The notes under the pieces: generated by a model
Told to the model about the DNA's origin: nothing
The model's database searches: none
Seen by the model: only the letters and a program-made list of their open reading frames with translations
Part shown: positions 35,201 to 57,922 of the stretch, one piece after another
Layout of the letters: every line of letters begins with the position of its first letter
Position numbering within the stretch: position 1 is the stretch's first letter
From: Oikopleura dioica
Taxonomy: Eukaryota; Animalia; Chordata
Direction: 5' to 3'
Assembly (NCBI GenBank): GCA_907165135.1
Contig: OU015567.1
Span: forward strand, 7,688,001 to 7,752,000
Length of the DNA: 64,000 bases
Made by a program: the position numbers and the translations under genes

Positions 35201-36948
35201 TATGAATTCTTTTGTAGTTCAAAATCGTCGCTGATTATTCTTCTTTTGAGAAAAAACTACTGTTTCTGAATAGAACTCGTGGAATATTCTACAGCCTGGG
35301 CAGATTCTACGCCGTGAAAAAGGATCAAAAGCGTGAGAAGTTTTCGGAAGAACGCGTTTGTTGTCTCAGTGATCCATCCAACAAAAGGTAGTATTGTTGT
35401 ATTTCCGTCGAAGAATAAAAAATACGTATAACTTGGCCGAGTACCAAATTGAGATAATTTGATGCCAGTTTACAGCTCCGTCGAGCATCAATGATGATAA
35501 AATGATAGTTGCCAGAAGACAGGAGTGTTTTGTAAGAAGCTACTCGACAAGAAACGTGTTGTTTCGGGAGCAAATTTAATCAGCCTCTGAAGAGCACTCA
35601 CGAGTTAGTAATTTTTTCTAGCGTCGAATAGCTAGACACTGACTACTAACAACTTCTAATAACAGTCATTTTGAGCAATTTGCTGAAGAAATTCTTAATT
35701 GAACTTGAATTATAAAGCTGGAAAAATCGAGCCGAATCGTCAAGAAAGAAATCTTCAAAGCAAGAAATAAAAGTTCAATAAACATAAATTCCTTTTTCAG
35801 ACGAGTGTTCAAAAAGAACCACTGTTTGAGGCAAAACAAGATTTGCCCAGAAGCGCGTTATCTCCTCACACAAAAATAATCGTCCAAACAATGCCTGCCC
35901 TATTGTCCCGTGGCTTTAGTTTTTCTTCGGCAATGCGCCAAAAGCACCCTTTAGGCCGGCGCCTTGAGCTGCTTTATCTCAGCAGCTGTCTAAATTTACA
36001 CACTCTCTTTGGTAAATTTAATTTATTCAATTTATAACTCTCCAGGAAAACCTTTGAAAATCGGAAATATTCAAACACTAGAAGCGTTTTTTTTTGCTAA
36101 AAAGACTCATCAAGGGTGCTCTAGATAAGAAGAAACTTACGAAACGTCATGTTTATTTGGTACGAAAAAGATTTATTGGCGACTTTGAAATGGAAGTCAA
36201 AGACTTTGTAGTTTTAAGCGCGCCTCGTAACTCACAAACATTTCGGATCATCAAACCCTGCGGTCACTTTTATGTCTTTTCTTTATTTTGGCGGCGAGTT
36301 CGAAAACTAAATTTCAGCGGGTCAAATTCTAAGTGGACTTAAAACTATATGTTTGCCTCTAAACAGCGAGTAAAGACAATTTCAAGAGCTTGCATTTCAT
36401 TTCAGTGCTCGAGGAATAAACTAAAGAGTTAAAGGCGATTACTAAGGCAAACATTTTGGCCAAGCACGTCAAATTGGCTAAACGAGCCACTTCCGAAATT
36501 TCCGAAAAAATTTTTAGAAAGAAATTTTTGAAGCACGTCCGGGCGCATTTTCCTCTTTTTCGCGGGTAATTGGCAAATAATCAAATATTTTGAGGACAAA
36601 AATTTTGAAGCAATCAACTGAAATTTTATTCTCCGGGCAGAAGCCCTGAATTTATTATGTAAGTAAATAGCCCAGTAGTCTGGGAAAAAGGTGTCGAGTG
36701 TTCCAATTTTGAATTTATTATCTTGACCTTCTTTTTGAAAAGATAAAATCTCACCACTAAAACTAGGAAAGTGGGCTTGAGTGCACCCACCTGTTCCATT
36801 TCCCCAGCTCTTACCCAGACTCTCGGCCACAGAGCCTTGAGCCTTGGGTTAACTGACCTTGAAGACCTGATTTGATCATCAAATAATTGCTAAGTTTGCA
36901 TCATAAAATCACGTAAACATCCAAATTGGAAGTCGAAAACACAGAGAA

Positions 36949-38094
36949 ATGAAACTCTTTCCCGCGCTCGTTTCCACCTTTCTTGCTGCAGAAACTTGCA
37001 GGTTTACAAGCGAATGAATACGCAGCGAAATTCTCCTTTTAGTGAGAAATCTTCTTGCGATGATTTGAAAAAGTACGAGCGCGTAGAAGCGGGCAACTTT
37101 GCGCGAGTACAGTCTCATGTGAACATGAAAAAATGGGGCAACTTATTTGGAATCAACAAGTTCTTTCACATGCGAAAGGTTTCAGGACCAGAGGATCCGA
37201 TTCCGAGGCCGAACGCGGACACGCTTTACTCGATCGGGGTCATTGATCTTTCTGCTGGACCAGTTGGACTTTCGGTTCCAGATGTTGGCGACAAGTACTT
37301 CTCCGTCACGTGTTATGATGAAGATATGTACATCACCGCGTACGAAACTGCTCCTGCGCAGTTTAAACTGAAGGACGACGATGAGATGAGTCGATATCAA
37401 GTTTGTGCGCTTCGTATAGCCGTAAACAGTAAAGAAGAGCTTCCTGAATTACACAAGATGCAAGACGAAGCCAAAATCTTTAGTCCTCAAGGTAACTCTT
37501 TCTAAAGCCTTTTTCCTGAGTTATAAATAAGAATCGTACCCGCCAATCGATTTGCCAGATTATGATCAAGAGCAGTACAAAATTGTTTACTCCAATTTGC
37601 TCACTCTTTCCCATCAAATGTCTGAGCTCGGCGATGCATACGCTTTCAAAGGCCAAAAGGATGATATTTCACGAATGCTTGGTGCCGCTGCAGGGTGGGG
37701 CGGTCTTGGAACTTCTATGGCCAAGTATGAAGGCGGAACTGTTCAAATCAACGATGGCAAGACCGAGTATATGATCAAAGTCGTCGGAGAGGTACCAACT
37801 GATTGCTTTTGGTCCGTTACAACTTACAAGGAAGAGTAAGATTCTAAAAAATCTTTTCCACTAGTCGAGTTATTTAGCCGGCTGACATACGGCATCAATA
37901 ACATCAATTCCAACAACTTGAAACGCGACAAAGATGGCAACGTCGTCATCATCTTCTCAAACAACCACACGGACGAGTCAGCCAACTATCTCAACATCGA
38001 GGAAAACTGGAACTACATCGTTCGAATTTACGAGCCAAAAGCGCCTGTGCGTGATGGAAGCTGGAAATTTCCTGAGCCAGTTCTTTACCAATAA
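36949..38094 (+). CDS. DUF1254/DUF1214-domain secreted protein (340 aa), 4 exons
   Basis: Signal peptide MKLFPALVSTFLAA; DUF1254 motif RPNADTLYSIGVIDLSAGPVGLSVPDVGDKYFSV; DUF1214 motifs FWSVTTY, KRDKDGNVVIIFS, WNYIVRIYEP...DGSWKFPEP. GT-AG introns 37002-37042, 37492-37531 and 37836-37877 all keep frame. Confidence 0.88.
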
Positions 38095-41000
38095 ATATTT
38101 GGCCATTATTAAATCAGTGTTGTTGACAGTTGTGGGTTAGAAACTTGTTTTAAAAATCGGATTTTCATTTCATCAACCATTCATCTCATTTGGCTAGACA
38201 TTCGACACGTGACCTTGAAGGTTCACATTGTGAACTCATTAAAATGAAATCTAGCCGATCTATTCTAGCGCAAAGAGTATAAACATGTAAAAATCAGGCT
38301 AAAACCTCTTGTAGGAAGTGTTCTGACACTATCTTATCAGTATCAATCTTTCCAAATGCGGTTTCTACTCTTAAACGTACTCGGATTGGTATTTTCCTTT
38401 CTCCATAAGTGCAGGGTTGAGAAAAGAATGAGGTATTTGAGCCTCGGAACTGGTAGTTGGAATATAAGCCTTAGTCCGTCACGCTGGGTTAAGAAAAAAG
38501 GTTCCGCTTTTTTCGAAATACCAGCTCAAAATACAACACCACGTATGTTACAGTAATCGCTCTTTTCGAGCCTTTTGGACACATGAAACCGGAAGAGCAA
38601 ACGAACACGTACACGAGAAATGCTTTAAAAGATGGGACTGGCATTTGAGCGTTTATCTGAGGCGATTATCCGGCTGATCGTGGGGCGACCGCGCGCATCA
38701 CCCACCGCTCGTGTTATCGCCAGTCCAGCCCTGTTATCGGGGATTTAGCAGGGATCCCGCTGGATTTCTATCTTCAGAACACTTCTACCCGCTGGTTTTA
38801 ATACTTCTTGGATACGTCTTGCTTTACAATTCTCGTCGATGCTCCAATTTTCAAGCGAAATCCAGCATTTTTATGATACGGTAAATAATAACCCAGTCAT
38901 ATCTTTCCCTCTCCTCATTTTGCTACTAACAAATGGTCTTCGTTTCCGAAGGGCCACTTTGTTTTTACAAAATCACCACTCGGGCAGGTGCTGATTTGGG
39001 AAATGCTTTCCTTTGCTTTTGCGAAAGAAAAAATGTAAATCCAGAGTTTACTAATCATTTCGTCTATTACCAAAACAATAAAATGAAAGTTGCTCTGGAA
39101 TTTGGAAAGTTATGTTTTCGCTGTTTTGGCAACAGCACTTGCCGCGCCGGCCGTCTTTCTTGTTGCACCGCAAGCGGAAGCAGTTATGATTTACAAAAAT
39201 CAAGCGAAAGTAAGCACCTAAAGGCGCTTTTTCGGTCTTAGAGCCTAAGCCACCTGAAAGTCTACGCTTTCAAAACTGCGCACTTTTCGAACGAGCTGGA
39301 GTTTACTTTTCTAAAAGACACGTGACATTGATTCTCCTTTTTATCCTTTCTAAAATGTAGCAATATTCTTGACACCCCGGCAGAACGCGAAAGCAAGCTA
39401 CCACAAGAGCTTATGTTTTAGATAAATAAAGAATTTTTAGCCAATTTGTCAAAAATTCAGTACCAACCGGCGGTGGCATTTAGCTCGTTGATTTTGAGAC
39501 TAAACAGAGACACCGCTAAGATTTATCCAAAATCAAAAGCCGAAATAACAAATGGACGTCTTTTTTAACTGCCGTAGTTGACGATTTTTAATTTAAGATT
39601 TTTGAAATTTCGATTTTGATAGAGCTTGAAATCTCTAATCGCTCGATTGGATCAAAATAAATCAAATAAAGCGAATGATAAATTCGCGCTCCTGTGAAAA
39701 TACGAATTTAGCAAGTAAAAAATCTGCGCGTGGAATGGCGAATTTGGTTATTTTAACAAAGAACTGGATCAAGTATCGGCCCGGAATCTGATTATGCGAC
39801 GGCCGTCACCATAATGTAAAACTGGCGGCACCTGCCACTTCGCCCTGAATACAAAATCAACCGCTCGCCACTTGTGGACTCGTCTTTTTTAGAATATCTT
39901 TTAAAAATCAACACTTATGCATTCTTACCGTAGTTATTGTTAGACAGGCCTTTTTCGTAGACAGTTTGAATAAAAGTTGGATTCTGAATATTTTTATAGT
40001 AATTTTATTTTTGACTAAAACTTGATAGACTCCAATCTTCGTCCGAATTTATGAAGAAGATTGAAGAAAACACCCTTTGTATTCGTTTTTTATCGTCCGA
40101 AACCCCCGAAAATGTACCTAACAACTTTACCATCGATCGAAAATTATTCTTTCAAGAAGAATACGGATAGCTTCTTCAAAGAGAAAGAAGAAGAGAGGGA
40201 ACATGACGATTATCACGACAATGGGATACTGGTTCATCCCGATGACATTTCTCCTTTGTAGTGGAGCCGTCTTGGTAAGAGAACTTGTTGAAAGGCCGAG
40301 ATATATTTTCTTAGTTTGCGTTACGCCTGGTCTACAAAACCCACAAGCAGGTTTGTGCAATTTCTAAGTATTTGCGAGTTTATGAGAAAATCTGGGGCTA
40401 GAATTGATGCAATTACTCTTGAATATTCGCGGTGAATTTAGCGTCTAAATTTTAGACGAACGAGCTGCTGCTGTTGAATTATGCCAATTATTTGAGCAAA
40501 GGATGTCGAATTCCGCCGACAGCAAAAGTGCTTCGCGTTTTTAAATTTTTGGCATTTTCCCAAGCACAAACTCAGATTCGCACAGAAAGACGGCGACTTA
40601 CAGTAAGTTTTAAAAACTAACAGTCAGTTTTGGAACTTCTACGAAGGAAACCGCGTCCAAGTTCAATATTTGCCCATGTCAAAGTACAAGATAAAAAGTG
40701 ATGGCTTGCAAAAATTTCGAAAAATAGGAGACCGGAAGTATTTTGGGATTCTAATGATAACATGCATTATTTGCATAGCAATTACGGGTGAAAGTTTTCC
40801 CAGGTCAAGCCAAGTTCATTTATCCGGGTTTTATCATATCGTGTTTTTTATCCGGGCATTTTTATTCTCGAAATTTGAGAGTCTTTAAATTAGACTTTGA
40901 ATTATTGAGACATAAAAATTTTAAATGAAGGCATAAGTAAAGGTTGATACTTTTTGATAGCCTTGAAAATAAGATGAATTTATAATTTTTCTTATAAATA

Positions 41001-55587: not shown

Positions 55588-57922
55588 TTAATCGACCTCC
55601 TCAATGGTGGGTCCGCCAGAAGCAGCGCCGGATTGGTCACCGCCAGCGGCTCCACCGGGAATCCACCTGGCATACCGCCTAAGAAGAAGTTGAATTCATT
55701 GAAAAAGATGTCGATTTTTACCTGGCATACCGCCGGGGGCGCCACCAGCACCCTGGTACATCTTGGTGATGATTGGGGTGCAGATCTTCTCGAGTTCCTT
55801 CTTCTGGTATTCGAACTCGTCCTAAAAATATTAGGAAAAGAGTCTTCCATTTTATTTTTACCTTCTCGGCAGTCTGGTTGGAGTCGAGCCACTGGATGGT
55901 CTCGCTGCACTTGTCGGAGATGGTCTTGATCTCTTCAGCGGAGATCTTGTCCTTGACCTTGTCGTCCTCGACGGTCTGCTTCATCTGGAAAGCATAGGAC
56001 TCGAGTTCGTTCTATAATATACAGTTAGTATTGGAAGGCAGTCAAACGAGTTTCACCTTGGCCTGGATCTTGTCCTTCTGGGCTTCATCCTCAGCCTTGA
56101 ACTTCTCGGCGTCGTTGACCATCTTCTCGATGTCCTCCTTGGAAAGTCGGCCCTTGTCGTTGGTGATGGTGATCTTGTTCTCTTTGCCAGTGGACTTGTC
56201 ACAGGCAGAGACGTTGAGGATACCGTTGGCATCGATATCGAAGGTGACCTCGATCTGGGGAACACCTCGTGGAGCTGGGGGGATCTGGGTGAGATCGAAC
56301 TTGCCAAGGAGGTTGTTGTCCTTGGTCATGGCTCGTTCACCTTCGAAGACCTGGATGAGGACACCGGGCTGGTTGTCGGAGTAGGTGGTGAAGGTCTGGG
56401 TCTGCTTAGTTGGGATGGTGGTGTTTCGCTTGATCAAAGCAGTCATGACGCCACCAGCGGTCTCGATACCGAGGGAGAGTGGGGCAACATCGAGGAGAAG
56501 GAGATCCTGGACTTCCTCGGATTTGTCACCGCAAAGGATGGCGGCCTGGACGGCGGCACCGTAGGCAACGGCCTCATCGGGGTTGATGGACTTGTTGAGT
56601 TCCTTTCCGTTGAAGTAGTCCTGGAGGAGCTTCTGGACCTTGGGGATTCGAGTGGAGCCACCGACGAGGACGATATCGTGGATGCCGTTCTTGTCGATTC
56701 GGGCGTCTCGGAGAGATTTCTCGACGGGGTCGAGGGTGCCTCGGAAGAGGTCGGAGCAGAGCTCTTCGAATCGGGCTCGGGTGATGGAGGTGTAAAAGTC
56801 AACACCCTCGAAGAGAGAATCGATTTCGATGGCGGCCTGGGTGGAGGAGGAAAGGGTTCGCTTCGCTCGCTCGCAGGCGGTTCGGAGACGTCGAACAGCT
56901 CGCTTGGATCCGGAGATGTCCTTCTTGTGCTTTCGCTTGAACTCCTGAAATATTTTTTAGAATAAGGGCTTCGATAATTTCGAAGCGTAAGTCAGATCGA
57001 GTTTGACAGCTCAGGGTTAAAAAGCTCTTTTGTAACTTCCAGGGAAAGTCAAGACAAATTGGGGTTAACATCCTTGCTGTCGAGGATAGCAAAATAAAAG
57101 TATATGAAGTTCACTGCCGATGATTGGCTTATGGTTTCGATATTTACCTGGGTGAAGTGGTTGACGAGTCGGTTATCGAAATCTTCACCACCCAAGTGAG
57201 TGTCACCAGCAGTGGATTTGACCTCGAAGATACCATCTTCAATGGAGAGGACGGAGACATCAAAGGTTCCACCGCCAAGATCGAAGATGAGGACGTTTCG
57301 CTCAGATCCGACCTTCTTGTCAAGACCGTAGGCGATAGCGGCAGCGGTGGGTTCGTTGATGATTCGGAGGACGTTGAGACCAGCGATGGTACCGGCATCC
57401 TTGGTGGCCTGTCGCTGAGAGTCGTTGAAGTAGGCTGGGACGGTGACGACAGCGTTGGGGACGTCCTTTCCGAGGTAGGCCTCGGCGGTGTCTCGCATCT
57501 TGGTGAGGACCATAGAGGAGATTTCTTCAGGGAAGAAAGTCTTGGTCTCGCCCTTGTATTCGACCTTAATCTTGGGCTTGGTGTTGTCGTTGATGACATC
57601 GAAGGACCAGTGCTTCATGTCGGACTGGACGACGGAATCGTCGAACTTTCGGCCAATCAATCGCTTGGCGTCGAAGACAGAGTTCGATGGGTTCATGGCG
57701 ACCTGGTTCTTGGCGGCATCACCGATAAGTCGTTCGGAGTCGGTGAAGGCGACGTACGATGGGGTAGTTCGGTTACCCTAAATAGAAGATGTAAGAATGT
57801 TATAAATGAAAATATCTAACCTGATCGTTGGCGATAATTTCGACTTTTCCATGCTGGAAAATACCGACGCAAGAATAGGTTGTTCCCAAATCAATACCAA
57901 CTGCGGCTCCCTTGGCGGCCAT
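55588..57922 (-). CDS. HSPA8: Cytosolic heat-shock cognate 70, multi-exon
   Basis: [48 protein letters not shown] repeats and C-terminal GPTIEEVD*. Confidence 0.97.
57005..57081 (-). ncRNA. SNORD36: Box C/D snoRNA, U36/SNORD36 (snR47) homologue, in a ~200-nt Hsc70 intron
   Basis: Terminal stem GACAGC/GCTGTC; box C-like AAGGATGT; 13-nt guide GAGCTTTTTAACC complementary to the conserved 18S GGUUAAAAAGCUC, directly followed by box D CTGA. Confidence 0.85.

Follow-up and report, generated by a model that had tools for sequence, protein, structure and literature searches.

How did a chordate come to carry a gene of an overwhelmingly bacterial protein family, and is the gene in use there? These questions are raised by a DUF1254/DUF1214 gene of the appendicularian Oikopleura dioica. 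The window examined here is a stretch of 64,000 nucleotides at 7.69-7.75 Mb of contig C5 in an O. dioica assembly of 64.3 Mb and 19 contigs (G000), and positions in the window are counted from its first letter.

The gene model was read by hand from the sequence and comprises four exons on the forward strand (Table 1). Exon lengths sum to 1023 nt, equal to 340 codons and a TAA stop, and all three introns have to be removed for the frame to be restored. With intron 1 unspliced, the frame from the ATG runs into a TGA within the intron. At intron 3, splicing to either of two AG acceptors further upstream would run into a stop, and only the acceptor at 37877 leaves an open frame. An AATAAA motif, read directly in the sequence, overlaps the stop codon and is likely to be the polyadenylation signal. 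An in-frame ATG within intron 1 was considered as an alternative start and ruled out as a conserved one: in the related locus on contig L003, described below, the intron-1 ATG is out of frame with exon 2.

Table 1. Features of the DUF1254/DUF1214 locus in the window and of the related or neighbouring sequences discussed in the text
Feature	Sequence	Position	Strand	Remarks
Upstream non-coding block	window	36672-36810	not assigned	about 130 nt, about 140-280 nt before the ATG
DUF1254/DUF1214 gene	window	36949-38094	+	four exons
Exon 1	window	36949-37001	+	ATG, 17 codons and 2 nt; hydrophobic, signal-like N-terminus, judged by eye
Intron 1	window	37002-37042	+	41 nt, GT-AG, phase 2
Exon 2	window	37043-37491	+	DUF1254 domain; includes both clade-specific cysteines
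Intron 2	window	37492-37531	+	40 nt, GT-AG, phase 1
Exon 3	window	37532-37835	+	linker and first part of DUF1214
Intron 3	window	37836-37877	+	42 nt, GT-AG, phase 2
Exon 4	window	37878-38094	+	remainder of DUF1214; TAA at 38092-38094
AATAAA	window	38090-38095	+	likely polyadenylation signal
ORF matching NAD-GH (PF10712)	window	57124-57816	+	E 5.7e-56
Spliced-leader copy	G000 C5	7682391-7682430		exact; opposite orientation to the next
Spliced-leader copy	G000 C5	7683035-7683074		exact
Intron 2, second lineage	L002	516-576		61 nt, GA-AG
Extra intron, second lineage	L003	680-744		65 nt, GA-AG
Extra intron, second lineage	L002	225-289		65 nt, GA-AG
386-aa ORF	L013	7237-8397	-	on the contig of P0186
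386-aa ORF family locus	G000 C5	4689269-4690602		no Pfam domain
386-aa ORF family locus	G000 C4	6692786-6694706		no Pfam domain
386-aa ORF family locus	G000 C4	4818866-4820205		no Pfam domain
386-aa ORF family locus	G000 C4	2707343-2708880		no Pfam domain
P0020 marine contig	L009	1-957	-	C5 cytosine DNA methylase, DUF1254/DUF1214 gene, WRKY19/EsV-1-7-type zinc-finger protein
P0020 marine contig	L010	1314-2240	-	as for L009

Pfam, BLASTP and tree searches were run exon by exon. Exon 2 matched DUF1254 (PF06863) with 64.4 bits (E 1.6e-17, cut-off 22.2) over profile positions 1-57 of 133, and the remainder of the domain in this exon aligned to homologues in BLASTP and MAFFT. DUF1214 (PF06742) was matched by exon 3 over profile positions 14-42 (18.1 bits) and by exon 4 over positions 57-111 (35.2 bits, cut-off 25), which indicates a single domain split by intron 3 with its order kept. 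Exons 2, 3 and 4 covered residues 29-181, 191-286 and 298-356 of the homologue P0003, colinearly and without gaps or overlaps, and residues 32-166, 174-266 and 276-338 of the Pseudomonas protein WP_207887614.1. Because the exons tile uninterrupted homologues of about 340 residues, every splice junction receives independent support. A sequence-only reading of the region had proposed a 340-residue protein with both domains and three GT-AG introns of 40-42 nt, and the hand-read model, the exon-wise Pfam matches and this colinearity confirm it.

The exons also retain the residues that characterise the family. The family alignment contains many conserved aromatic and polar residues. Conservation in at least 88% of 66 references defines 48 columns, of which 42 were identical in the window exons. 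The remaining six comprise two changes of G to A, one each of R to K, D to E and G to N, and one gap. Exon 4 was 41-49% identical to the C-termini of homologues. By all sequence criteria tried, the gene is a short member of the DUF1254-DUF1214 family.

The gene is single-copy in the assembly and physically integrated in a chordate chromosome, with the features of a host gene. Animal genes surround it at some distance, namely an ELAPOR/ephrin-receptor-like cysteine-rich gene, ankyrin repeats, a voltage-gated channel, a bHLH gene (47.6-48.2 kb) and Dcc1 (51.7-52.4 kb). Pfam gave no match for the seven ORFs of 95-149 aa scanned from 31.7 to 42.2 kb, so the gene-poor setting among animal genes that had been noted from the sequence is real. 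Coding GC was 46% and GC3 was 51%, both inside the span shown by the window's host exons; the introns are AT-rich. Elsewhere in the window, one ORF matched the Pfam profile NAD-GH, a profile that picks up Hsp70 genes on their antisense strand. The spliced leader published for O. dioica (40 nt; PMC6883708) was present in the assembly in 49 exact copies and two copies with one mismatch, and was absent from a reversed control, which identifies the genome as O. dioica in the broad sense. Two of the exact copies lie in opposite orientation about 5 kb before the window.

Exon 2 was searched against 1.84 billion representative proteins and gave 1038 matches at E ≤0.001. Only three clusters exceeded 50% identity, all of them short fragments at about 74-76%, encoded on contigs L002 and L003 from ENA metagenomes of a second Oikopleura lineage. 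L003 showed the ATG, the exon 1 length of 17 codons, the donor position and the hydrophobic character seen in the window, with a dN/dS of 0.13 for exon 1. Its intron 1 occupies the same position, with 43 nt and GT-AG ends. The exon 3 start was conserved in L002, and intron 2 of this contig was found at the same position as in the window, but with 61 nt and GA-AG ends against 40 nt and GT-AG. The donor dinucleotide of one orthologous intron thus differs between the two lineages. The contigs of the second lineage do not reach the site of intron 3.

Both contigs carry an additional intron inside the stretch that corresponds to the window's exon 2, after codon 73 of the in-frame exon 2 reference. 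This second intron with a GA start is bounded by a 10-nt inverted repeat: in L003 it opens with the arm GATCGGATAA, which shows 90% complementarity to a second arm whose end lies 8 nt upstream of the acceptor. The inverted arms are reminiscent of hairpin or MITE-type intron births. Parsimony favours a gain in the L002/L003 lineage rather than a loss in O. dioica, since the outgroups are intronless.

Comparison of the window with L002 and L003 over exon 2 gave a protein identity of 74-75%, a dN of 0.14-0.20 and a dS of 1.9-2.0 or too saturated to estimate, and a dN/dS of about 0.1 or less. The low ratio and the maintenance of the frame in two deeply diverged lineages argue that the gene is functional and under purifying selection, and this conservation also suggests that it is expressed and spliced. 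Upstream of the gene, a non-coding block exhibited long runs of identity with L003, whereas the DNA between block and ATG had diverged and synonymous sites are saturated between the lineages. The block is single-copy in the assembly; conserved and unique as it is, it identifies L003 as the same locus and not a repeat. It gave no Rfam match and no covarying structure as a small RNA, and is probably a cis-regulatory element, for which it is at present a candidate.

Outside Oikopleura, identity to relatives was 33-40% and flat over many proteins. Named bacterial relatives came from Pseudomonas, Roseibium, Lentisphaera, Variovorax, Ruegeria, Pelagimonas and several actinobacteria. Contexts of bacterial homologues included an OprB porin with a sulfatase and a group II intron reverse transcriptase, a TonB-dependent receptor with a TetR regulator, and a DUF4136 protein. 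Contexts on the contigs of P0158, P0004 and P0189 were read from gene lists only; P0189 has a photolyase-related neighbour (PF04244), a domain with no match in the O. dioica assembly. No named animal or other eukaryote was found among the best 120 profile matches or the 20 clusters looked up, in a database that includes mollusc, rotifer and EukProt proteins. These results support a foreign, non-animal type for the gene and hint, indirectly, that ascidians and vertebrates may lack it.

Unrooted maximum-likelihood trees combined 75 references with the row of a single exon. All three exon trees placed the window gene in a clade of five with P0003, P0187, P0025 and P0186, supported at 98/71 for exon 2 (careful search), 96 for exon 3 and 91 for exon 4 (quick searches). 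The O. dioica branch was long (1.49 in the exon 2 tree). Two cysteines, at residues 90 and 121 of the exon 2 product, are common to exactly these five members among 67 rows. As a shared derived character, the pair provides support that is independent of the tree method. Searches of 1.84 and 5.8 billion proteins turned up no bacterial sequence within this clade or adjacent to it.

A full-length tree of references only grouped the other four members at 100/98 and joined them at 97/82 to a clade of Tetraselmis virus 1, P0020 and P0188-P0190; four of these five virus-clade rows have a deviant amino-acid composition. The exon 4 tree joined the five-member clade to the same virus clade at 97. By contigs or names, the rest of the tree is bacterial. 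The animal-like clade and the virus clade are reciprocally monophyletic, so the direction of transfer is not readable from the tree. Taken exon by exon, the window gene shared about 32-38% identity with the protein of Tetraselmis virus 1.

To whom do the members of these two clades belong? The best placed member is P0186, encoded on Tara Oceans contigs (L012-L014) of 31-37% GC with sparse ORFs. Its contig carries kynureninase exons parted by GT-AG introns of 50 and 42 nt. Over four exon pieces, this kynureninase was 61-67% identical to the O. dioica gene, with 256 bits in total; human kynureninase scored 234 bits across that stretch. The contig also contains a 386-aa ORF that was 54-68% identical to four O. 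dioica loci (Table 1); among species-named proteins, the closest, from molluscs and rotifers, reached no more than 43% identity. Because of the introns and identity of the kynureninase and the closeness of the 386-aa ORF to O. dioica, we assign the contig, with moderate confidence, to another appendicularian-like animal.

The 386-aa ORF was also considered as an appendicularian-specific marker and was rejected as such, as it has relatives in molluscs, rotifers and Bigelowiella at 39-44% identity; the O. dioica copies are still closer. With these relatives and those in many metagenomes at 38-45% identity, the spread of this family is oddly patchy.

The P0186 gene itself is a single intronless ORF of 369 codons with an N-terminal membrane anchor. 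P0025, 60% identical to it, is likewise intronless and lies on a sparse contig of 8.4 kb. The contigs of P0003, P0185 and P0187 are hardly longer than the gene itself, and three of the four other clade members are on contigs too short or too bare for an owner to be assigned. The gene is therefore not private to O. dioica but belongs to a small clade with at least one other member that is probably encoded by an appendicularian-like animal.

In the neighbouring clade, P0105 is a protein of Tetraselmis virus 1 (YP_010783612.1), a giant virus of 668 kb and the only named virus there. P0020 was found on marine contigs of 23-26% GC, with a C5 DNA methylase and a protein with three WRKY19/EsV-1-7-type zinc fingers as neighbours. 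The nearest Atlas clusters to the zinc-finger protein were all Nucleocytoviricota, and the contig probably belongs to an undescribed giant virus. IMG/VR scans with P0020 alone and with a five-row alignment (A3) returned pattern matches and no confirmed relative; as these scans covered short exact patterns only, they say little. The sister clade is best read as giant-virus genes. The horizontal transfer from bacteria that the sequence-only reading had proposed is thus borne out in part: the gene is of foreign type and nested among non-animal sequences, and its nearest outside relatives appear to be giant-virus genes, not marine bacteria.

We are largely confident that the locus is a functional single-copy O. 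dioica gene that entered the appendicularian lineage by horizontal transfer. A gene of this family would have reached an appendicularian ancestor and been retained there under selection. It would have stayed intronless in at least one descendant lineage, while three tiny spliceosomal introns would have been gained in the lineage of O. dioica and an additional GA-initial one in the sister lineage. Such an order, with introns added after acquisition as had been suggested from the sequence, is supported by the appendicularian-like homologue, which is intronless although introns of 42-50 nt interrupt the kynureninase gene of its contig. The signal peptide had been described as part of the domestication of the gene, and this was not upheld. 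A hydrophobic signal or anchor is present at the N-terminus of bacterial homologues, of one virus-clade homologue (P0020) and of the appendicularian-like homologues, and the signal peptide was therefore probably inherited with the gene.

The route may have led through a giant virus or, with equal plausibility in our estimate, through a bacterium related to the source of the virus clade's own genes; we would not call either one probable. Transfer from another eukaryote appears unlikely. The sister position of the virus clade fits virus-mediated transfer, and an unsampled bacterial lineage could have fed both the animal and the virus clades. Appendicularians filter and retain virus-sized particles, which makes contact with giant viruses plausible. 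A more specific scenario would have a giant virus of the marine plankton deliver the gene to a filter-feeding chordate, whose lineages then record a stepwise birth of introns: none in one, three in O. dioica, and at least three in the sister lineage, where the intron-3 site is uncovered and one intron is absent from the window gene. We offer this scenario tentatively and regard it, as a whole, as rather doubtful.

The strongest competitor is a direct transfer from a marine bacterium to an appendicularian ancestor, with giant viruses acquiring the gene independently from related bacteria. Domain architecture, length and N-terminal signal match those of hundreds of bacterial proteins, and in identity (35-39%) bacterial proteins are no more distant than the virus clade. 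Moves of DUF1254/DUF1214 genes from bacteria to eukaryotes are also known, in haptophytes (PMC7190310) and in Malassezia (PMC7488429). However, the animal-like clade joins the virus clade before any bacterial row, both at full length and in the exon 4 tree, and searches of the two large protein collections found no bacterial sequence in or beside the five-member clade. We give direct bacterial transfer a substantial minority chance. Vertical inheritance of an old eukaryotic gene, lost in nearly all other animals, would account for the patchy occurrence of the family in eukaryotes. The nesting of the clade among bacterial and viral sequences, the lack of named animals or other eukaryotes among the best 120 profile matches and 20 clusters, and an intronless homologue within an intron-bearing genome argue against it and make it improbable.

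Only the bacterial type of the domains would speak for contamination or mis-assembly of microbial sequence. The sequence-only reading had argued from the introns against this, and its argument was upheld and extended: each of three spliceosomal introns is needed for the frame, the contig is chromosome-scale with animal genes on both sides, the composition of the gene is host-like, and the same locus, with its upstream block and intron positions, was recovered from an independent metagenome of a related lineage. The chance of an artefact is negligible. A decaying or silent relic, integrated but unused, would be in keeping with a gene that stands alone in a gene-poor stretch. This is very improbable, as both lineages keep an open frame despite saturated synonymous sites between them, at a dN/dS of about 0.1 or less, and the conserved family positions (42 of 48), the splice sites and the upstream block have all been maintained. 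Acquisition by horizontal transfer, followed by retention as a working gene, is the reading we prefer.

What the product might do was approached through its fold, which was examined on P0186 as a proxy (38% identical to the window protein; AlphaFold model with pLDDT 91.8). The P0186 model matched 3U07 (Z 24.4), 2P3Y (Z 24.2) and 6ANS (Z 17.6), and these three structural-genomics entries, all labelled uncharacterised, were its only strong matches. Otherwise the fold search for functional relatives gave just a weak beta-sandwich likeness to galectins and to accessory domains of beta-galactosidases, located in the C-terminal sandwich of the model, with Z at most 5.8 and under the tool's own meaningful level. 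The product is most likely a protein of two beta-sandwiches that would be exported or displayed outside the cell and would bind or process a small ligand or glycan. Sulfatase, porin and TonB receptor contexts of homologues, the conserved aromatic and polar residues, the signal-like N-terminus and the cysteine pair, each a weak indication, lead us to commit to an exported ligand-binding or glycan-binding protein as our guess, which we hold as possible and somewhat short of probable.

The closest known counterparts in architecture are the short bacterial DUF1254-DUF1214 proteins, such as WP_207887614.1 of Pseudomonas sp. 30_B (343 aa), which share the domain order, a similar length and the N-terminal hydrophobic signal. 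In contrast to these, the O. dioica gene is encoded by an animal, contains three spliceosomal introns, is 33-40% identical to them and specifies two cysteines found only in its clade. The Tetraselmis virus 1 protein and its AT-rich marine relatives form the sister clade and have C-terminal signatures in common with the O. dioica protein, for example F(S/T)N..N..NI..WNY.VR.YEP. Unlike the O. dioica protein, that of Tetraselmis virus 1 has neither the N-terminal hydrophobic segment nor the two clade cysteines. Solved relatives of the family, all uncharacterised, are 3U07 (VPA0106), 2P3Y/3VB9 (VPA0735) and 6ANS. The O. dioica gene provides an animal handle on this large family with three crystal structures and no known function.

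In the literature searched, we found no report of a DUF1254/DUF1214 gene in Oikopleura or in any animal. Earlier transfers of the family are a Synechococcus-like contribution to haptophytes (PMC7190310) and the DUF1214 genes of Malassezia (PMC7488429). They concern the same Pfam family, with different recipients (algae and yeast) and different donors.

Well-documented foreign genes in chordates are few, and tunicate cellulose synthase is the textbook case. The O. dioica gene adds a clean and checkable, though not unprecedented, example. Its apparent nearest relatives in giant viruses raise the question whether a virus brought it into this animal, which filters such particles, and an intronless copy in what appears to be a related animal would offer a dated starting point for intron gain in O. 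dioica, including the non-canonical GA-AG type. The locus may be most valuable for work on how introns are gained, and as a possible instance of transfer from a virus to an animal. The tunicate genes CesA (cellulose synthase) and GH6 (a glycosyl hydrolase) are of bacterial origin and became fixed in tunicates (PMC3390340; PMC7464555; PMC10334666). Like them, the O. dioica gene is foreign, integrated, intron-bearing and, by its conservation, functional. The enzymes that CesA and GH6 encode have known roles, and both genes are common to tunicates, whereas the DUF1254/DUF1214 gene has so far been seen only in Oikopleura-like animals and its nearest relatives appear to be viral.
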